Sequence record: NC_025447.1
Length of the DNA stretch: 64,000 bases
Direction: 5' to 3' (one strand)
The position numbers and the translations under genes are program-made. A model generated the notes under the pieces. That model was not told where the DNA came from. It saw nothing but the letters and a program-made list of their open reading frames with translations, and searched no databases. The stretch's first letter is position 1; each line of letters begins with the position of its first letter. This document shows positions 54,503-64,000 of this stretch, one piece after another.

Positions 54503-54516
54503 CTATGGGGTGTACT

Positions 54517-55092
54517 ATGTTTTTAAAAAATACTTATGAATTAATTAAAATGCTTCAAAATATGAATTCAGGTGGATTGTTTCCCTATTACTCTGAGGAT
54601 GAAACTCATCGTTTAGTCCTTAAATTGGATGAAACTGGACGTATTATATCACTAAGAACAACAGTTCCCAGTGTAGAACCAGTAATTACCAAATCGACTC
54701 AAAATTCAGGAACTGCTGTTCAAACACCACAAATGTACACGATTAGCACTCCACCTATTAAACGAGTTGCTTGTATTGTGAATATAAAAGTATCTAAGGA
54801 CTATCGTGACTTAATATCAGTAGAATGGTCAGAACTAACATCATCATTAGCAGGAAATGGATTTGTAGTATCTAATGGATTTGTTACTACAAATCCAAGT
54901 CCAGCACAAAATGTGAAAGAAGGACAACAGATCATGAGTGCATTGTATCTTAGTAATGGTTGTGTTATCATCAATGGTAAGTTGTATAGCGATTCCGACC
55001 CCACAGCATTCACTGAAGATTTGATTGGTGATAAAGAATACAGCATTCTTGAAATTATGAATTTTAAAAAGGTATATGAAAACCATGACTAG
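54517..55092 (+). CDS. hypothetical protein
   Basis: ATG 54517; about 191 aa. Confidence 0.65.
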   Translation: MFLKNTYELIKMLQNMNSGGLFPYYSEDETHRLVLKLDETGRIISLRTTVPSVEPVITKSTQNSGTAVQTPQMYTISTPPIKRVACIVNIKVSKDYRDLISVEWSELTSSLAGNGFVVSNGFVTTNPSPAQNVKEGQQIMSALYLSNGCVIINGKLYSDSDPTAFTEDLIGDKEYSILEIMNFKKVYENHD

Positions 55093-55657
55093 ATTTCATC
55101 AAGATGATTTGCCATTTATACAAGAACTAGAAGAACTGGTGATAAGTATTATGGATGAAATTAGTACTTGGGATATAACAGTTTTTCGAAATGTATATGA
55201 TAAAGTGGTGAATTTTAAAAATGTTAATATTGAAGTAAAACATAATAATTTTTACTTAACAAAACAATTCATTCTAACTCGTCCTGGAACAAAGCCAGTT
55301 AAACGTAATTTGTCATTCGGACACCTGGTTGGTGCAGAAAATGTACATGATGAATGGGTTGATTCAATCTATTCGTATACAAAAGCACTTATTCCTGATA
55401 TTGAGAAAAAATATTATCTTAGTATAACATTAGATGAAAACGGAAATCTTAATGCATATTCAATAAATTCTTCTTCAAATGTTCCATTACATTCAGTGAC
55501 GATTGGTGATAAAAAAATGCTAATAAATTCTGAAACATGGTATAATAGAGAAAATTTCGCAGCAGAATCATTTCAGTACTCAGTATCTGAACCAAAGTCA
55601 CCTTTTGATTTAGTGTTTGTTAATAATATTATTTTACGTTTTGGTGTAGGAGTGTAA
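55076..55657 (+). CDS. hypothetical protein, weak member of the EExxFQxS family
   Basis: AAESFQYSV near the C-terminus. Confidence 0.65.
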   Translation: MKTMTRFHQDDLPFIQELEELVISIMDEISTWDITVFRNVYDKVVNFKNVNIEVKHNNFYLTKQFILTRPGTKPVKRNLSFGHLVGAENVHDEWVDSIYSYTKALIPDIEKKYYLSITLDENGNLNAYSINSSSNVPLHSVTIGDKKMLINSETWYNRENFAAESFQYSVSEPKSPFDLVFVNNIILRFGVGV

Positions 55658-55660
55658 TTT

Positions 55661-56014
55661 ATGCTAATTTATTTAAGTGTTATTGTAATTTCGTTACTGG
55701 TATCATTCGCTGTTCTTAAAATTGTTGCTATTTGTAGAAGTAAGATTGATAGTTCTGAAACTAGATCAGTACTTGACTTGATTATGGATCATCCTAAAAT
55801 CTGTGGTATTATTGTATTATTCGTTGTACTGATTAATACATATATTGTCAGGGAACATTTATATAATATGTATGATTGTAGTGTACGTTCTATTTCACAA
55901 GGTGTTGAAACAGACTATAGTTGGTACTATGAGAAATGTCGATTTAAAAACCAGCATGGTATTTGGGTTGATTTTGATAAACTACGTGGAACTCCTTCAG
56001 GAGAAGAAGAATAA
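55661..56014 (+). CDS. membrane protein
   Basis: Two hydrophobic segments; SD AGGAG. Confidence 0.7.
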   Translation: MLIYLSVIVISLLVSFAVLKIVAICRSKIDSSETRSVLDLIMDHPKICGIIVLFVVLINTYIVREHLYNMYDCSVRSISQGVETDYSWYYEKCRFKNQHGIWVDFDKLRGTPSGEEE

Positions 56015-56016
56015 TT

Positions 56017-56508
56017 ATGTTTGAATTCCCAGAAGAGTCATTTAACTTCATTGACCCTACTGATGATGGATACCGACATATTAACATTTATAGTAAAGCC
56101 AGAACGAAGTTAGGTAGAGATCTATCTAACTTTTCTTCGCACAGCTTCAAACTTGAACCATATGGATGGTTCCCATCAGTTGAAACATTTTACTTTTGGT
56201 TTTTAACTGGTCAAAAACATGATGACCTTAGAAAAGTATCTGGGGCAGCAGCAAAGGCCGCCGCTAACAAATATATGCATGATCGAATTGAAATGACAGA
56301 TGATTGTATCTCAATAATCCAAGATGCTATTTGTGCTAAGATAATTCAAAATCCAGAGTTAGCCGAAAGATTAAGAAAAAGTAAATTGCCTTTTTACCAT
56401 TACTATGTATATGGTGGTAAAGTTGTAGATGTATCCGACGAACATGATTGGTTTGTTAAAACATTCGAATATATAAGAACGGTGTTAAAGGAAAACTATA
56501 ATGGGTAA
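56017..56508 (+). CDS. NADAR-family protein (T4 gp30.3-like)
   Basis: INIYSK...LGRDLSNF...FPSVETFY...LPFYHYYVYGG. Confidence 0.65.
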   Translation: MFEFPEESFNFIDPTDDGYRHINIYSKARTKLGRDLSNFSSHSFKLEPYGWFPSVETFYFWFLTGQKHDDLRKVSGAAAKAAANKYMHDRIEMTDDCISIIQDAICAKIIQNPELAERLRKSKLPFYHYYVYGGKVVDVSDEHDWFVKTFEYIRTVLKENYNG

Positions 56509-56779
56509 ATGTTGGGTATGTGTCAAGGTGTTTGATGAAGAATATGAAATAATATTAGATGTATTACCACAGCAGTACATGGTGTGTAATGAAAAATACA
56601 AATTGGACACCTACCCGACCCCCATGTACATGGGAATATGTCCTTTGTGTGATTCAAATGGTGTGTCCAATAGTGAGATTTCATTCACTAACCAAGCCAC
56701 AACTAACTGTGTATCTGGGTATATAAGAGAGAATCGAGAATATTTTATTAGGAGATTATATGAACGACAAAATCTTTGA
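56501..56779 (+). CDS. hypothetical protein
   Basis: 92 aa with CxxC. Confidence 0.6.
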   Translation: MGKCWVCVKVFDEEYEIILDVLPQQYMVCNEKYKLDTYPTPMYMGICPLCDSNGVSNSEISFTNQATTNCVSGYIRENREYFIRRLYERQNL

Positions 56780-56990
56780 TACATATGACATCGATACTTT
56801 ACTAACACCATCTGATAACAGTACTGTTAAAATGGACATGTACTGGATTGTCGTTGATAAAAAAGTATTTAGACATAAAATTACTAAAGTTTGGCAATGT
56901 AATAAAAACAAATCTATTGTTGAGGGATTGGCACAATGCATTCCTAATGCAGAGGTTTTATTTTTACCATACGCATATACAAAGGAATAA
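56760..56990 (+). CDS. hypothetical protein
   Basis: SD AGGAG, 76 aa. Confidence 0.7.
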   Translation: MNDKIFDTYDIDTLLTPSDNSTVKMDMYWIVVDKKVFRHKITKVWQCNKNKSIVEGLAQCIPNAEVLFLPYAYTKE

Positions 56991-56991
56991 A

Positions 56992-57153
56992 ATGAAAAAA
57001 ACTTGGAAAATATTCACAATACCTGCTATAATGTTGTTATTGGCACTTTTCACACCGCAGAGTCATGTATTGTCTCTTAATATTGTGGAAATAATTCTTC
57101 TTGTAATTCACTGTGTCGTGTGTTATAATTATGTAAAAGGTGATAAAGAATGA
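56992..57153 (+). CDS. small membrane protein
   Basis: ATG 56992 after AAGGA; hydrophobic. Confidence 0.6.
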   Translation: MKKTWKIFTIPAIMLLLALFTPQSHVLSLNIVEIILLVIHCVVCYNYVKGDKE

Positions 57154-57572
57154 AGTTCTTTAAAATTCGAATTGGTGTAAGTTCTGGTTTATCTCATTGG
57201 GTATTTTATGATTTACCTGATAGTTATACTATTGATGATGTAATTGATTTATATACCGAAGATCAACAATGGGTGTTAGATACCGAAACACATAGAATTG
57301 ATTGTCAAGAGATTAGTGAAGAAGATTACAAGCACGGAAAGCAAGCCATGAAGTATTTTGAAACAAATATCAAAATGCTGTCTGAAAACGTATTTCCTGT
57401 AAAAGAATGGGCAATTTTACTTGCTAATCCTAAAAAACCTGTTAGAATTGGTTATCCAAATTTTCATATGGTGTATCGTATGAATGATAAGCGAGAGCTT
57501 AACTATCAATACGATTACGATTCATCTAAGTTTGGAGTTCTTAAACAATTTTTAAAGGCTTATCCAGTATGA
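57150..57572 (+). CDS. hypothetical protein
   Basis: ATGA overlap. Confidence 0.7.
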   Translation: MKFFKIRIGVSSGLSHWVFYDLPDSYTIDDVIDLYTEDQQWVLDTETHRIDCQEISEEDYKHGKQAMKYFETNIKMLSENVFPVKEWAILLANPKKPVRIGYPNFHMVYRMNDKRELNYQYDYDSSKFGVLKQFLKAYPV

Positions 57573-57904
57573 GTGAAGATAGTAAAGAGTATATTTTACG
57601 TTGTTCTTGTGGCGATAAAATGGAGCATTGCGTTCACATTGCACAATTTGACTTGACAGAGGAATATGGAGATGATAAACTTGGTCAATGTCTGATAAGT
57701 ATGCGTTTAAATCCTTTTTTAAAATGGTATAACCGTGTATGGGTTGCAGTAAAGTATGTTTTTGGTGTAAACGACTATCAATATGTAGAAGCAACAATTG
57801 ATGTTGACATTCTAAAAGAAGTTGTGTTACAATTAGAAGATACTAGAACTGATGAGGTTAAAAAAGAACAAAGAGAAAAACGTACTGATGTGAAGGTTTT
57901 ATGA
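57569..57904 (+). CDS. hypothetical protein
   Basis: ATGA overlap; RCSCG...HC. Confidence 0.7.
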   Translation: MSEDSKEYILRCSCGDKMEHCVHIAQFDLTEEYGDDKLGQCLISMRLNPFLKWYNRVWVAVKYVFGVNDYQYVEATIDVDILKEVVLQLEDTRTDEVKKEQREKRTDVKVL

Positions 57905-58095
57905 GTACTGAACTTTATGAAAAAAAGTACTGTACAAATTGCTCAACTGAGTATACAATACAAGGTATGTTGATTTGTACAATATGTCAGTCAAAGAAAT
58001 CAGCAACTTTCATCGTTGATGATAGATTTGGTGATTTGAAACAGTTTAAAGCAAACCGCAATCTTCGTATTTTTAGCAATCTAAATAAGGAATAA
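57901..58095 (+). CDS. small zinc-ribbon protein
   Basis: CTNC...CTIC. Confidence 0.65.
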   Translation: MSTELYEKKYCTNCSTEYTIQGMLICTICQSKKSATFIVDDRFGDLKQFKANRNLRIFSNLNKE

Positions 58096-58098
58096 TAT

Positions 58099-58527
58099 AT
58101 GAATATCGAACAAACTATCCGTGAACATTCTTTCTTCGCTCCAGAAACTGGTCGTGTTATTGAGAGCGTCAAAATCGAAGAACTAATGGTCAATGTTAAA
58201 TACAAAGAACCAAATGATGAGATTAGCAGTACTTTTTGTGCTCTACGTGCACCATTCCGTAATGAAAAAGCTAAGAAACCAGCATATGTTCTTGCCATTG
58301 CACTGGGTTGTGTTGTAAAACTTGCAGTTGATGAAAATCTTCTGAATATTAAAGTTGCACCAAGCAATGACGATGAAAACATTGATTTGAACTTTGATGG
58401 TTCTCTTGATGAAGATGTATTTTTCCAACAGTCACTTGTTTACGACTTCCGTACAGTGACACATTCTCACATCAAGTTCATTAATGAAATGGTTGAGATT
58501 GTTGCTGAATACGAAGAATCTCTCTAA
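58099..58527 (+). CDS. EExxFQxS-family hypothetical protein
   Basis: DEDVFFQQSLVYDF. Confidence 0.7.
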   Translation: MNIEQTIREHSFFAPETGRVIESVKIEELMVNVKYKEPNDEISSTFCALRAPFRNEKAKKPAYVLAIALGCVVKLAVDENLLNIKVAPSNDDENIDLNFDGSLDEDVFFQQSLVYDFRTVTHSHIKFINEMVEIVAEYEESL

Positions 58528-58580
58528 GTAAATACAAAAGCCTCCATTATGGAGGCTTTTATCACATAAGGAAATGAAAT

Positions 58581-59132
58581 ATGATAGACCAAATTAAAAT
58601 CCTTACAAAGCAAATCACTGATTTTCTTTCTGATAAAGATGGATTTAATACAGAAGTAAAAATGCACGGTGTTAGTGTTGATGTAATTGCACCAAATGGT
58701 AATGTAACAAGTTACGACATGTATGAATTACTTCTTTATACTCTAGCAGTACGTAAACTAGGTAGTGATATTGAACTCAATATCAATACTGATGAAAGTG
58801 GGAATAAAATTTTTGCAATCAACACCAGTGCTAAATTCGATATCAGTACTGAAATTAAAAAAATAAATGAAAGTTTTATTGGCTTTAAGCATGAATCAAT
58901 TCAAAGTGTTTTTATTGGAAAGCAAACTTCTAATAGTGAATGCCCATATTGTGTAATGACTTTATATAAAGATGGAAACTGGATGCGTCAAGATTTAGTA
59001 TTTGCTGAACTTCTGTATGCATTTACACATGAACTTAAAATCGAATTGGACGATAGTGTTTATTGCTTTAAGAAAATTCGAAATATAACTAAAGATATAC
59101 AAACCCAACTTAAAGAATTAAATGATAAATAA
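58581..59132 (+). CDS. hypothetical protein
   Basis: 183 aa after the terminator AAAGCCTCCA/TGGAGGCTTT. Confidence 0.7.
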   Translation: MIDQIKILTKQITDFLSDKDGFNTEVKMHGVSVDVIAPNGNVTSYDMYELLLYTLAVRKLGSDIELNINTDESGNKIFAINTSAKFDISTEIKKINESFIGFKHESIQSVFIGKQTSNSECPYCVMTLYKDGNWMRQDLVFAELLYAFTHELKIELDDSVYCFKKIRNITKDIQTQLKELNDK

Positions 59133-59292
59133 ATATACCAGAAATGGTTAACATATCATGTTACTTTCCTCCCTTACATAATAATGATGCGTTATTATAT
59201 TTTCATTTTGTTCTTATTCCCCTTTTGGTACAAAATCATTTTAGTACTGCCCCGATCTTCGGGGCATTTTTCTTATCTAAAATTGAGGATAT

Positions 59293-59688
59293 ATGAAGAA
59301 CAATATTGGAACTTCAATAATTAAACCACTTTCTTATTACCTTGAAAAATTTAGAAGCACAAATGGTAATAAATTTAATAATATATTTCAGTTCTCTCAT
59401 AAAGAATATATTACAATTGATCATTTTTCAAAGAAACTAATGTATGTAAATGATAATAGTCATATTATTAAATTATCATTCGATATTGAGTTAGATAAAT
59501 TAACATTTACGGAATACATTAATCAAAAAACTTCTTTTTTATGTCAATACAATAGGAAAGTATATAGTAATATTTCTATGTATCTAAATGATGAATATCA
59601 CTTTCAACAATCTACAATAGAAGAAGTATTGTTCAGTACTGAAGAATTAAAAGAACTATATTACTGGTATAATTATTTCACATCTTGA
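59293..59688 (+). CDS. EExxFQxS-family hypothetical protein
   Basis: NDEYHFQQSTIEE. Confidence 0.7.
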   Translation: MKNNIGTSIIKPLSYYLEKFRSTNGNKFNNIFQFSHKEYITIDHFSKKLMYVNDNSHIIKLSFDIELDKLTFTEYINQKTSFLCQYNRKVYSNISMYLNDEYHFQQSTIEEVLFSTEELKELYYWYNYFTS

Positions 59689-59713
59689 CATTATTGTGGG
59701 TTTATCCTACAAT
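59685..59713 (+). promoter_or_regulatory. sigma70-type early promoter
   Basis: TTGACA-N17-TACAAT upstream of the paralog run. Confidence 0.7.
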
Positions 59714-59743
59714 ATATGATGATGCTGCATTGAGGATAAATTT

Positions 59744-60154
59744 ATGAGTTTAGATTTACACAATGAACTAAAATATTTTTTAGATTTGGACATATCAGAA
59801 TTGAACCACCACGTCAATCATATGACTAGTACTGTATGGTGGTCTAATGATCAAGACGACCCAATTATCCAACTAAGTGATGAATCGTCAATTATGCGAT
59901 TTTATAAGATTAATTATAAAAAGAACATCAAGATCACATATGTACCATACAAAAACATACTACTAGTCGAAACACTTAATCCAAGTTCTTTATTAAAAAT
60001 CACCGATTTAGATACATTACAAACAAGTGAATCTTTATTCCAACGTTCATTAGTTGATGATCTTGGTGGTATTACTTTTGAAGATATATTACAATTGAAG
60101 AATATGTATAGTGAATTGTTGGAGATTAAAAACACTTTAGTAATGGGGAATTGA
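59744..60154 (+). CDS. EExxFQxS-family hypothetical protein
   Basis: TSESLFQRSLVDDLG. Confidence 0.7.
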   Translation: MSLDLHNELKYFLDLDISELNHHVNHMTSTVWWSNDQDDPIIQLSDESSIMRFYKINYKKNIKITYVPYKNILLVETLNPSSLLKITDLDTLQTSESLFQRSLVDDLGGITFEDILQLKNMYSELLEIKNTLVMGN

Positions 60155-60155
60155 T

Positions 60156-60560
60156 ATGGTAAGTTTACTAGATATTGATAATACCAGTTTAGTGCTGGTG
60201 AAAAAAGGTTTAATTCCAAATTCTAAAAAAATTGATTATGCTGTTATTGAAACAAATATTGGAAATATCTGGTACGACTCTGAAAGGGATATTGTGTTTA
60301 GCTGTGTAGACAGTGATCGTTCTGAATGTTGTAGAGTCGGTCATGACGGACAATTTGTTTTTGAATTTCGTTATTGGAAGGACGCAAAATTTCACCAAGA
60401 ACTGGTTGCTTTGTCAAATGAACTATATACAGAAGAATCGTTCTTCATGGCTAGTACTATTAATGATTTTGGTTCAGTTACATTTGAGTACTATAAAAAA
60501 ATATACGCACTATCCAGAGAAGTTATGAAAATTATCAGAACTGCTGAAGGTAAAGAATAA
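60156..60560 (+). CDS. EExxFQxS-family hypothetical protein
   Basis: TEESFFMASTINDFG. Confidence 0.7.
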   Translation: MVSLLDIDNTSLVLVKKGLIPNSKKIDYAVIETNIGNIWYDSERDIVFSCVDSDRSECCRVGHDGQFVFEFRYWKDAKFHQELVALSNELYTEESFFMASTINDFGSVTFEYYKKIYALSREVMKIIRTAEGKE

Positions 60561-60561
60561 C

Positions 60562-60939
60562 ATGACTACTATATATGATATTTTGGGTGTTCTGAGTAGA
60601 AATATAGATGATGATTTTGTTATTGTTCAAGATACTAGAAATACATTTCAACTACCAATAGGTTCACCAGATAGGTTAATTTTTAATAGATACTCAAATG
60701 AACTAACTTACATCCATGATGGGATTGCAATTGTATCAGTTTCTATAAACGACTATACAATACGATATGTATATGACTTCAACGATTATTGTACAAGAAT
60801 CCACAGTATTGATATTTCCGAAGAGGAACTATTCCAATTGTCATTGATTGAGAAAAATGTAATAGGAATTACAGAAATTGGTATTATTAAAAAAGCATTA
60901 AACTATACAAATATAAGAATTAATGGTGGGTGCAGATGA
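60562..60939 (+). CDS. EExxFQxS-family hypothetical protein
   Basis: SEEELFQLSLIEK. Confidence 0.7.
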   Translation: MTTIYDILGVLSRNIDDDFVIVQDTRNTFQLPIGSPDRLIFNRYSNELTYIHDGIAIVSVSINDYTIRYVYDFNDYCTRIHSIDISEEELFQLSLIEKNVIGITEIGIIKKALNYTNIRINGGCR

Positions 60940-61391
60940 ATGTTGACGAAATAAAAAATCATTTTGAAATTGCAATGTCATGTGAATTTGACACACAACG
61001 TGTTCATGACCCGAAAGAACATATACGCATTTGTTGTGAATTGTCAGATGATTGTAATATTTTTATTGGAAAAACCTATGACATGATCGATCTTTCATGT
61101 ATAGATCCATTGGAAAGAAAAACAAAATATTTATATCTGTACAACACAACATCAGATACGATTGCAATACAACTAATATCAACCACAACATCCCACAGTT
61201 ATTATAACATAACTGAGGTTAGTAGTTTAACGTTAACCGAAGAAGGATTCTTTCAACAATCGCTTATTCGTGAAATTGGTGTTAGTTATGATGAGTTAAA
61301 TGTATTAGTAGATTGTTTCGAAAAATTGAGTACTTTTGTATTATCCCTTTTTAATATACAGTCGCAAAATCCAATGGTGGTGAAATGCTAA
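60930..61391 (+). CDS. EExxFQxS-family hypothetical protein
   Basis: TEEGFFQQSLIREIG. Confidence 0.7.
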   Translation: MQMNVDEIKNHFEIAMSCEFDTQRVHDPKEHIRICCELSDDCNIFIGKTYDMIDLSCIDPLERKTKYLYLYNTTSDTIAIQLISTTTSHSYYNITEVSSLTLTEEGFFQQSLIREIGVSYDELNVLVDCFEKLSTFVLSLFNIQSQNPMVVKC

Positions 61392-61825
61392 ATCCAAGTA
61401 AATTTCTCCACTTACTTTCGATAACATCAATACCGGATCTTACCAGTGAAACTAATGAATATCGTGAAGCTGGGGTGGTGTCTATGGAACTCGATACATT
61501 TGACCACAAATGCTATGTGACATATGACCCACCGCGTTATGGTAAAGAACATTCTTCTTTTATTTTTGTATTCGTATACACGGTATATGATAATACAACA
61601 CTTGATGATGTTTGTATTGACACATACGAAATTTGTGATAATATCATAACTGATGACAACAATAACTCATTTGATATGTCACTATATAACACAGAAGAAT
61701 CGTTGTTTCAACTTAGTACTGTTATTGATGCACCATCATTAGAAGATATAAAACAATTTCAAGAACATCTTGACGCAGTTCGTGAGATGTTCTATAATCA
61801 TTATCCAGAAGTAGAGTTCAATTAA
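61385..61825 (+). CDS. EExxFQxS-family hypothetical protein
   Basis: TEESLFQLSTVID. Confidence 0.7.
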   Translation: MLNPSKFLHLLSITSIPDLTSETNEYREAGVVSMELDTFDHKCYVTYDPPRYGKEHSSFIFVFVYTVYDNTTLDDVCIDTYEICDNIITDDNNNSFDMSLYNTEESLFQLSTVIDAPSLEDIKQFQEHLDAVREMFYNHYPEVEFN

Positions 61826-61839
61826 CTAAAGGTAATAAG

Positions 61840-62100
61840 ATGACTAAAGTAGTTCGTAAACGCCACATGATGAACATGGATGAATTTCGCACATTTGACA
61901 AATATCGTACTATGTTTCGTATGCTTTCACAGGGCCGTCCAATCGTCATTGTAACAGAGAATTACATGTCACCTGAGATTATGTTTGGTAATTATGAAAA
62001 GGTCTTCATGTTGTACGTGAAGCGTGGATTACTTGCAATCAAGACATTAACTGAAGCAACTGATGAAGATATGGATGGTGATAATACCTTTACCATGTGA
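61840..62100 (+). CDS. hypothetical protein
   Basis: 86 aa, SD AAGG. Confidence 0.65.
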   Translation: MTKVVRKRHMMNMDEFRTFDKYRTMFRMLSQGRPIVIVTENYMSPEIMFGNYEKVFMLYVKRGLLAIKTLTEATDEDMDGDNTFTM

Positions 62101-62108
62101 GGAAATAT

Positions 62109-62186
62109 ATGTCTGAAAAGCCAAAAGAACCATTAGATCGTGATGATGATTTTTATGACGAACGATATGGAGATGATGATGAGTGA
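62109..62186 (+). CDS. 25-aa acidic micropeptide (not in the ORF track)
   Basis: SD GAGGA, then MSEKPKEPLDRDDDFYDERYGDDDE; its stop overlaps the next gene's start. Confidence 0.45.
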   Translation: MSEKPKEPLDRDDDFYDERYGDDDE

Positions 62187-62430
62187 ACATAGTGCTGTGC
62201 TTAAAAAGATTTTAAAGGAACTTGATGGTGAGTTTAATGTCACAGAAGAAGAATATCAGCATTGGAAGAAAGGTTTTGAACAACTAACCGAGTATGATAA
62301 AGTGTTCAATATGATTGGCGTAATTAGCCAGTACTTACTCGGTGGAGGACGTGCAAGTGCTTCAATTCTGGCATCTGCAATCATCTGTACATCACGATGG
62401 TGTGATGAAAAAAGTTTGGAAGATTTCTAA
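62179..62430 (+). CDS. hypothetical protein
   Basis: ATG 62179 after GGAG. Confidence 0.65.
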   Translation: MSEHSAVLKKILKELDGEFNVTEEEYQHWKKGFEQLTEYDKVFNMIGVISQYLLGGGRASASILASAIICTSRWCDEKSLEDF

Positions 62431-62482
62431 ATAAGATGCTATAATATATTATAGTACCTTAACAATATAAAAAGGATTTTAT

Positions 62483-63343
62483 ATGAAACCTATCCGAGTA
62501 CTTTCTCTTTTTAATGGAATGAGTGTGGGATATATGGCATTGCAAGATGCTGGTATCCCAGTTGAAAAATATTATTCATCCGAAATTGATAAGTACGCAA
62601 TAGCTGAATCTCAATCTAACTTTCCTGATATTATCCAATTGGGTGATGTAACTAAGTGGAGAGAATGGGATATTGAGTGGGACAAAATAGATTTATTAAT
62701 GGGTGGTTTCCCATGCCAAGCCTGGTCAGTTGCAGGTAAACAGGGTGGTTTAAATGATATACGTGGGCAGTTATTTTTAGTAATGGTTGAAATTTTTGAT
62801 CATATCAAAAGTCTCAATCCTAACTTGAAATTTCTGTTTGAAAATGTTAAAATGAAGGAAGATTTCAAAGAATACATTAATAGTATTTTAGGAATCACGC
62901 CAGTACTGATAAACTCCCAGCATTATACGCCTCACTTCAGGCAGAGATATTACTGGTACAGTACTGATAAGCTTTTTATACCACCTGCATTATCCAATGC
63001 ACCTAAACTTCAAGATATTATTGAAGATGGTTGGTACACTGACAGAACCGCTTCGTACTGTATAGATGCTAACTATTTTAAAGGTGGTGATTGTAACCAG
63101 TACTTTAATAAATCCAGACGACAATTGGTGTTTCGTGATCCAGTGATTAATCGTCAATATCTATTAGAGAATGGCAAAAGAAATATTGACTATAGACACT
63201 TAAGTGTAGTAGAATGTTGTAAATTACAGGGTGTTCCTGAAGATTTCTTTAAAGTGTCTAGTAAGACACAAGCATACAAAATGCTTGGGAATGGATGGAC
63301 TATGCCAGTTATATCACATTTACTAAGAGAGATATTCTTTTGA
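62483..63343 (+). CDS. DNA (cytosine-5) methyltransferase, orphan
   Basis: LSLFNG (motif I), SEID, GDV, GGFPCQ (motif IV), FENV (motif VI), RQR, LGNGW (motif X). Confidence 0.92.
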   Translation: MKPIRVLSLFNGMSVGYMALQDAGIPVEKYYSSEIDKYAIAESQSNFPDIIQLGDVTKWREWDIEWDKIDLLMGGFPCQAWSVAGKQGGLNDIRGQLFLVMVEIFDHIKSLNPNLKFLFENVKMKEDFKEYINSILGITPVLINSQHYTPHFRQRYYWYSTDKLFIPPALSNAPKLQDIIEDGWYTDRTASYCIDANYFKGGDCNQYFNKSRRQLVFRDPVINRQYLLENGKRNIDYRHLSVVECCKLQGVPEDFFKVSSKTQAYKMLGNGWTMPVISHLLREIFF

Positions 63344-63825
63344 ACATAAACAAATACCAAACTTATATAAAACGTACAGAAAGTTTCAAACGGCTGGCTG
63401 TAAAATCTGAATTAGAATTTAATTTGTATTATCCTAATATTGGTGATGAGGTATTTTATTGCTCTCATTCAAAGAATGGAACTTTACTTAAATCGGGTAA
63501 AGGAACTATTGTTGATATGACCGCAAATTTCAGAGGTAAACTTAATGTAATGTACAAAGTACAAGATTCAAGTACTGAGTGTATTCATGAAGTGATGCAT
63601 AACATACCTGCATATCCAAAAGATTTTGTTCAGCTAATATCTCGAAGGGAGAAACCTATGTTTTATTGTGGTTATGACAAATTAACCAAACAAATTATTC
63701 CTAATACTATGGGAAAATTTAAAAGTGATGTGAAATCTGAACTTGAAAAGAAATTTGGCACGTCATGGGAAACTGAAAACGAGTTTATCGAAATTCGTTT
63801 AATTGAAATTACTATACTTGAATAA
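63295..63825 (+). CDS. hypothetical protein
   Basis: 176 aa ORF followed by the terminator ATCCACGC/GCGTGGAT. Confidence 0.65.
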   Translation: MDYASYITFTKRDILLNINKYQTYIKRTESFKRLAVKSELEFNLYYPNIGDEVFYCSHSKNGTLLKSGKGTIVDMTANFRGKLNVMYKVQDSSTECIHEVMHNIPAYPKDFVQLISRREKPMFYCGYDKLTKQIIPNTMGKFKSDVKSELEKKFGTSWETENEFIEIRLIEITILE

Positions 63826-63867
63826 TTACAAATCCACGCATTGCGTGGATTTTTCATAGGTGCATAT

Positions 63868-64000
63868 ATGCCAATTCCTTATGTTAAAATTATTAATAAT
63901 ATTCTCGATTCATGGGAAGATGTTATTACTGGTAAAAAGCAACCATCACCAGTACATGCTTTATCTGGGAAACTTCAATTCAGAATGTCAAACCAAACTG
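63868..64000 (+). CDS. partial hypothetical protein running off the window
   Basis: ATG 63868, open to the window end (MPIPYVKIINNILDSWEDV...). Confidence 0.5.
   Translation, partial: MPIPYVKIINNILDSWEDVITGKKQPSPVHALSGKLQFRMSNQT

Follow-up and report, generated by a model that had tools for sequence, protein, structure and literature searches.

The EExxFQxS gene array of phage 121Q

The DNA analysed in this study (hereafter the window) corresponds to bases 1-64000 of the genome of Escherichia phage 121Q (KM507819; 348,532 bp), and the coordinates of the window and of the genome coincide, the segment 58000-62000 being 100% identical to that record. Phage 121Q is an Asteriusvirus, i.e., a RaK2-like jumbo myovirus. 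In its last part, the window carries on the + strand seven genes encoding small proteins (125-153 amino acids), which share the motif [ST]-E-E-x-x-F-Q-x-S-[TL]-[IV], positioned 31-49 amino acids from the C-terminus, and which are referred to here as the clear window members of the EExxFQxS family. They were compared with their counterparts in the phages ph0011, UE-S1, G17 and phAPEC6 and in Klebsiella phage RaK2, and were scored with a profile of their common C-terminal region (the module), namely a hidden Markov model (HMM) of 43 positions iterated to convergence.

The genes gp80 (58099-58527; 142 amino acids; motif D-E-D-V-F-F-Q-Q-S-L-V; 32.6 bits) and gp83 (59293-59688; 131 amino acids; D-E-Y-H-F-Q-Q-S-T-I; 27.7 bits) stand on either side of the non-member gp81. 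The other five genes, located between 59744 and 61825, are abutting (1 base apart) or overlapping. They are gp84 (59744-60154; 136 amino acids; S-E-S-L-F-Q-R-S-L-V; 36.5 bits), gp85 (60156-60560; 134 amino acids; E-E-S-F-F-M-A-S-T-I; 43.6 bits), gp86 (60562-60939; 125 amino acids; E-E-E-L-F-Q-L-S-L-I; 27.2 bits), gp87 (60936-61391; 151 amino acids from the ATG at 60936; E-E-G-F-F-Q-Q-S-L-I; 33.2 bits) and gp88 (61385-61825; 146 amino acids with a net charge of -21; E-E-S-L-F-Q-L-S-T-V; 24.6 bits). The start of gp87 is a GTG at 60930 in the list of open reading frames (ORFs), and the gene measures 456 nucleotides in the G17 annotation. All seven motif strings quoted in a preliminary description of this DNA were found again, at the ORFs beginning at 58099, 59293, 59744, 60156, 60562, 60930 and 61385. 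A further (ninth) member of 180 amino acids is encoded by the gene 63841-64383 on the + strand, of which the part 63841-64000 belongs to the window, the 3′ end lying beyond it.

Significance of the motif and extent of the family

The occurrence of a genuinely shared motif was ascertained with the module HMM, which gave the seven ORFs 24.6-43.6 bits (E = 2e-8 to 2e-14) and the neighbouring non-members less than 2 bits, and which returned no match in 5x shuffled ORFs and a single one (E = 0.064) in reversed ORFs. The likeness between two members that had been noticed at the DNA level was also verified: the 14-mer ACAGAAGAATCGTT, which encodes T-E-E-S, occurs exactly at 60429 and 61691, for 0.03 matches expected by chance.

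The array is not a local unit, being part of a family that has 55-61 copies in the 121Q genome. Written as a regular expression, the motif occurs in 39 ORFs of the whole genome, and the module HMM retrieves 55 ORFs at E ≤ 1e-3, all of them, in both cases, on the + strand. A wider profile, for which 150 members of the family were used, detects 61 places in 121Q, 59 in ph0011 and 41 in RaK2. Since the related Asteriusviruses possess 551-593 ORFs, roughly one gene in ten belongs to the family.

When 1.84 billion cluster representatives were searched with a profile, 176 clusters were obtained at E ≤ 1e-3, all of 62-210 amino acids, and no fusion to other domains occurs among these 176 clusters. 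The distant clusters that were sampled come from RaK2, phiKp_21, the Salmonella phages Munch, 7t3 and SE_PL, and metagenome contigs of up to 366 kb. The cluster representatives that possess the motif (n = 152) are otherwise less than 25% identical. In the form [LMY]-[TS]-E-E-x-[YLF]-F-Q-x-S-[LT]-[VI], the motif is present in 152 of 156 sequences (cluster representatives and close gp85 homologues), with an invariant F, a Q in 93% and an S in 92% of the cases, and the two E positions conserved at 91% and 84%. The members, which measure ~100-220 amino acids, are mostly acidic (median isoelectric point, 4.8; median net charge, -9).

Each window member falls in a PHROG of its own, devoid of an assigned function, and the cross-matches between these PHROGs occur mostly via the module. 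No significant Pfam family was found for any window member, and none recurred among the 150 members or among the longest ones. The CARM1 N-terminal Pfam matches displayed by two of the 150 members (E = 0.06) were too weak for use. A profile search of all sequences of the PDB gave one match, which is noise (E = 0.71), and the look-alikes from a protein atlas were discarded as being at noise level (best score, 0.84).

N-terminal bodies, age and selection

The regions that precede the module (the N-terminal bodies) had been described as unrelated, which is correct at the sequence level. Pairwise phmmer comparisons among the bodies gave no matches, except within two recent groups at other places of the genome; scanned alone against the PHROGs, each body matched its own PHROG only; and, of the seven window members, a single one was scored above shuffles by a leave-one-out body HMM. 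Among paralogues, conservation is confined to the module, whereas in pairs of orthologues body and module are conserved to about the same degree. It follows that no ongoing arms race is making the bodies hypervariable, and that they diverged long ago, each of them having been kept since.

The 121Q region 54505-63825 is collinear with RaK2 ORF176-196. In this alignment, gp80 (58099), gp84 (59744), gp85 (60156) and gp87 (60936) pair with the RaK2 ORFs 184 (E = 1e-42), 186 (E = 6e-15), 187 (30% identity; E = 2e-15) and 191 (E = 6e-9), respectively. The same RaK2 stretch comprises further module-bearing genes, ORF189, which lies roughly at the place of gp86, and ORF196. As the gene order of the array is common to 121Q and RaK2, the duplications must be older than the split of the two genera, and the array is not recent.

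The ratios of nonsynonymous to synonymous substitution rates (dN/dS) of the members, calculated against ph0011 and UE-S1, are 0.08-0.32 (e.g., 0.08-0.10 for gp80 and 0.08-0.24 for gp83), the neighbouring genes being similar, which indicates that every copy tested is maintained under purifying selection. The fastest members are those encoded by the ORFs 60930 and 61385 (47-67% identity to ph0011 and UE-S1), gp87 being the fastest-evolving of all (47-51% identity).

The history of the array also concerns the upstream block (55076-57572; + strand), which is syntenic with RaK2 ORF177-181 and opens with ORF 55076-55657 (193 amino acids), previously listed as a weak member. The module HMM gives this ORF only -0.6 bits. 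In phmmer it pairs with the syntenic RaK2 ORF177 (E = 7e-11), the motif of which, E-E-F-S-F-Q-N-S-L-I (14 bits), aligns with the 121Q remnant A-A-E-S-F-Q-Y-S-V-S. Because the RaK2 orthologue keeps an intact motif, we regard ORF 55076 as a family member with a decayed motif, so that its earlier rating as weak was correct.

Individual differences between phages were noticed within the array. The ph0011 counterpart of gp83 (L009, 5941-6189) is annotated with only 249 nucleotides, the alignment covering only 85 residues, so that truncation or decay of this member is possible in that phage. In G17, the orthologue of gp80 (L008, 4725-5306) measures 582 nucleotides, versus 429 nucleotides in 121Q, and is annotated as 'partially similar'; its megablast match is in two pieces, which points to an insertion or replacement within a family member. 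Finally, RaK2 ORF188 (L012, 5401-5814), which resembles peptidyl-tRNA hydrolases, lies within the array, flanked by the gp85 and gp86 orthologues, and is absent from that place in 121Q.

Predicted structure

The AlphaFold2 (AF2) model of gp85, calculated with 60 family sequences (predicted local distance difference test score (pLDDT), 86.8; predicted template modelling score (pTM), 0.79), consists of seven consecutive antiparallel strands (residues 13-87) followed by the helix 93-102, which corresponds to the motif, and the helix 110-130. Body and module are predicted to form one compact domain, in which the motif helix has a pLDDT above 90. In the gp88 model (150 sequences), the module is also confident (residues 100-146; pLDDT, 84-89), with helices at positions 104-113 and 119-139. 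Both models thus predict with high confidence the helix that had been announced behind the motif. We infer that the [ST]-E-E residues would provide the N-cap and the acidic first turn of the motif helix, F being the obvious packing residue.

The independent model of the RaK2_187 orthologue available in BFVD matches the gp85 model with a template modelling (TM) score of 0.87. The BFVD models of paralogues from RaK2, GAP32, CBB, Yersinia phage fHe-Yen9-03 and other entries superpose on the whole gp85 model with TM scores of 0.5-0.6, over 120-140 columns and with 12-17% identity, which suggests one shared fold for many members. The preliminary description had pictured a constant module equipped with variable heads, and had opposed to that picture the possibility of one ordinary shared fold, to which the gp85 and BFVD models come close. 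What is left of the former picture is a constant C-terminal module of ~45 amino acids, together with bodies that have no detectable shared sequence; the module itself seems not to be a detachable tag on unrelated heads, since it is part of one compact domain in the gp85 model.

A Foldseek comparison of the gp85 model with the PDB gave nothing usable (best E = 0.04). In a full structural search of PDB representatives, polo boxes occupied eight of the ten best rows (Z = 5.7-6.9). As all structural matches are below Z = 8, we treat them as analogues of the family, not as relatives.

Expression context and virion status

Two sigma-70-like promoter matches lie in the vicinity of the members, both on the + strand and both with 11 of the 12 consensus bases. 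The first one (57804-57833; TTGACA-18-TACAAT) lies upstream of gp79 and gp80. The other one (59685-59713; TTGACA-17-TACAAT) lies between gp83 and gp84, ahead of the five-gene block, and both of its hexamers recur in ph0011 and, with TAAAAT as the second one, in UE-S1, together with the GAGGA ribosome-binding site. A GC-rich terminator-like hairpin (58534-58562; listed on the - strand, with a palindromic stem) follows gp80, at a place equivalent to that of a terminator in the G17 annotation. An intrinsic-terminator-like hairpin with a T run (59248-59266; + strand) follows gp81, where a terminator is annotated in both G17 and UE-S1.

Genome-wide, the strong sigma-70-like matches are distributed as 116 on the + strand versus 22 on the - strand, and they are common around the array (55-62 kb). 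They are sparse in the main family cluster, at 160-190 kb, so that early timing is not claimed for the whole family. The earlier statement that five contiguous genes stand behind one sigma70 promoter was confirmed as to the promoter match at 59685 and the arrangement of the genes. The strong matches accumulate at 140-160 kb, where 22 of them immediately precede the main family cluster. No published transcriptome of a 121Q-like phage was found in the literature.

The phAPEC6 orthologues of the window members (gp127c-132c and gp134c) are absent from the virion proteome of 62 proteins determined by mass spectrometry (PMC7247149), and the virion absence of the members outside the window rests on an approximate mapping of positions only.

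Proposed role of the family and alternative explanations

The safest statement is that the EExxFQxS family consists of ancient, maintained and lineage-restricted small acidic non-virion proteins, predicted to be built on one sheet-plus-two-helix domain. Going further, we propose that the helical pair would be the constant keystone of the fold, the motif helix being N-capped (the [ST] cap, the E-E first turn and the invariant F) and paired with the second, amphipathic, helix, and that the sheet would have diverged into ~60 surfaces, each maintained on its own. Host-type promoters would drive an early synthesis of the proteins, which would bind stoichiometrically to different host or phage targets, thereby contributing to host takeover or counter-defence. 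We attribute a probability of about 0.5 to this proposal taken as a whole, i.e., a large and ancient non-virion family with a compact domain, the members of which are diversified early binders operating in takeover or counter-defence.

The following points weigh against it. Only one member, gp85, was modelled confidently, and the body of gp88 has a pLDDT of 36-57, so that a shared fold is suggested for many members rather than for every one; the bodies have no sequence homology, even when searched with profiles. The near-invariance of the polar residues of the motif (the two E, Q and S; see the percentages given above) exceeds what a purely structural role usually needs. Strong sigma-70-like matches are few in the main family cluster (160-190 kb), and the early timing is therefore not established for the whole family. 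Wastewater metatranscriptome runs gave scattered contigs of 150-300 nucleotides, at low depth and on both strands, and were rejected as providing no evidence of transcription.

Because its polar residues are more invariant than packing alone needs, the motif has to be considered also as a docking site, i.e., as an exposed conserved helix that would connect ~60 different bodies to a single partner shared by all, of the phage or of the host, in the manner of an adaptor library. We hold this explanation to be possible rather than probable. It would account for the near-invariance of E-E, Q and S across 152 representatives that otherwise have so little in common (<25% identity), for the module being confident even where the body is not (gp88), and for the positions E(-4), E(-3), F(0), S(+3) and [LT](+4), which from helical geometry would fall on one face of the wheel. 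Yet the motif helix (pLDDT > 90) is part of a single compact domain in the gp85 model, no candidate partner was identified, and an acidic first turn combined with a buried F is equally expected from plain helix capping and packing. A more far-reaching version, in which the shared helix would plug all the bodies into one machine (for example a phage hub, a chaperone or a protease of the host), so that each adaptor would deliver a different host protein to one common fate, seems to us rather unlikely. The helical pair might also operate as an interface for homo- or hetero-oligomers, the members assembling together into mixed complexes or into some larger structure inside the cell. The constancy of a single element among the paralogues would be accounted for if they had this interface in common, and it is established that the nearest structural analogues oligomerise (dimers for the Plk4 polo boxes, trimers for p32/Mam33). 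These analogue matches are weak, however (Z = 5-7), and nothing found here positively supports an assembly, the prediction of a gp85 homodimer (score, 0.01) counting neither way; we therefore view oligomerisation as quite improbable.

The sequence of the motif resembles the sites of viral proteases. The TEV (tobacco etch virus) protease recognizes E-x-x-Y-x-Q followed by G or S, and members outside the window display strings such as E-E-Y-Y-F-Q-Q-S and E-E-N-Y-F-Q-L-S, which would be compatible with a TEV- or 3C-like processing of the motif liberating the C-terminal helix. This explanation is hardly credible and was rejected, because the motif is modelled as an ordered helix (pLDDT > 90), the residue after Q is variable, the S being one position further on, and the 121Q genome has no match to Peptidase_C4 or Trypsin_2, and thus no chymotrypsin-fold protease. 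In addition, the window members are absent from the virion proteome, i.e., from where the phage maturation proteases act. As compared with these alternatives, the proposal of a compact domain diversified into many early binders is the one that we prefer.

Neighbouring genes

Three loci of the same region, which are not members of the family, are worth describing. The gp81 gene (58581-59132; 183 amino acids) lies between family members, with terminator-like hairpins on both sides, and lacks the motif. RaK2 has a well-conserved counterpart of it (ORF185; E = 7e-55), and no known family was matched. By far the most conserved gene of the block encodes a protein of 163 amino acids (56017-56508), which is similar to RaK2 ORF179 (E = 1e-80), has a dN/dS of 0.04 and has no Pfam match; the RaK2 annotation mentions a similarity to a protein of Shigella phage AG3. 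Behind the array, the C-5 cytosine DNA methylase locus (62483-63825) comprises in 121Q an ORF of 286 amino acids and then an overlapping ORF of 176 amino acids. This locus corresponds to two separate genes in RaK2 (ORF194 and ORF195), and is annotated in ph0011 and UE-S1 as one methyltransferase gene of 1881 nucleotides (626 amino acids). The difference may be a gene fusion, a split or a different enzyme.

Significance and comparison with known systems

About one in ten genes of 121Q, and 40-60 genes in each of RaK2 and ph0011, belong to one unnamed family that has neither a Pfam model nor a solved relative. A maintained coding capacity of this extent must serve something important in infection, and the EExxFQxS family is a defined and tractable entry point to the use that giant phages make of their extra genes. 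Several of these phages have been proposed for therapy (e.g., PMC11895373 and PMC12648861), so that the function of a tenth of their proteome matters for safety too.

As far as the fold is concerned, the gp85 model may be compared with two groups of eukaryotic proteins. Polo boxes are kinase domains that operate as protein-binding and dimerising modules. Those matched here (the polo-box domains (PBD) of Plk1, Plk2 and Cdc5, the polo box 3 (PB3) and cryptic polo box of Plk4, ZYG-1 and KKT3) likewise have a C-terminal helix that packs over an antiparallel beta-meander sheet. The matches extend over ~80 residues, at 2.8-4.0 Å and with 6-11% sequence identity, and their Z values below 8 are typical of chance architecture. 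Moreover, a polo box has six strands and one helix, whereas the gp85 model has seven strands and two helices, and no match to Pfam POLO_box occurs among the families listed for the 150 members (E ≤ 1). The MAM33 proteins are mitochondrial, and p32 forms a doughnut-shaped trimer. Similarly to the gp85 model, p32/gC1qR/Mam33 displays seven consecutive antiparallel strands followed by two C-terminal helices, and both are strongly acidic. The corresponding matches cover the model residues 8-134 (Z = 4.8-5.5; 92-100 residues; root-mean-square deviation, 4.2-4.8 Å), and differ from a true relationship in that there is no MAM33 signal in Pfam or in the PDB sequences.

Regarding the proposed role, the small acidic inhibitors made early by other phages, such as the Ocr-/ArdA-type DNA mimics and the T4 early 'monkey-wrench' proteins, offer a resemblance drawn from general knowledge, in that they are likewise small, acidic, non-structural and produced from host-type promoters. 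No sequence or fold match to them turned up in the PDB or BFVD searches.

Regarding its size, the family is best compared with the paralogue expansions of jumbo phages. In the papers searched on RaK2-like and other jumbo phages, we found no mention of the family or of its motif, fold or extent. Nearly 10% of the RaK2 products were reported to be paralogues, and no family was described (PMC3622015); for CBB, 22 paralogous ORFs were listed in the corresponding paper; and a comparative review of jumbo phages describes other expansions, the EExxFQxS family not being among them. The EExxFQxS family is large, ancient, specific to the RaK2-like jumbo phages and undescribed. Although it is not named in the papers on jumbo-phage expansions (PMC3622015 and PMC7824862), it has in common with these lineage-specific expansions, exemplified by the ~10% of paralogues in RaK2 (PMC3622015) and by the ~35 zinc-ribbon copies of Bacillus phage G (PMC7824862), the presence in one genome of dozens of copies of one small protein.

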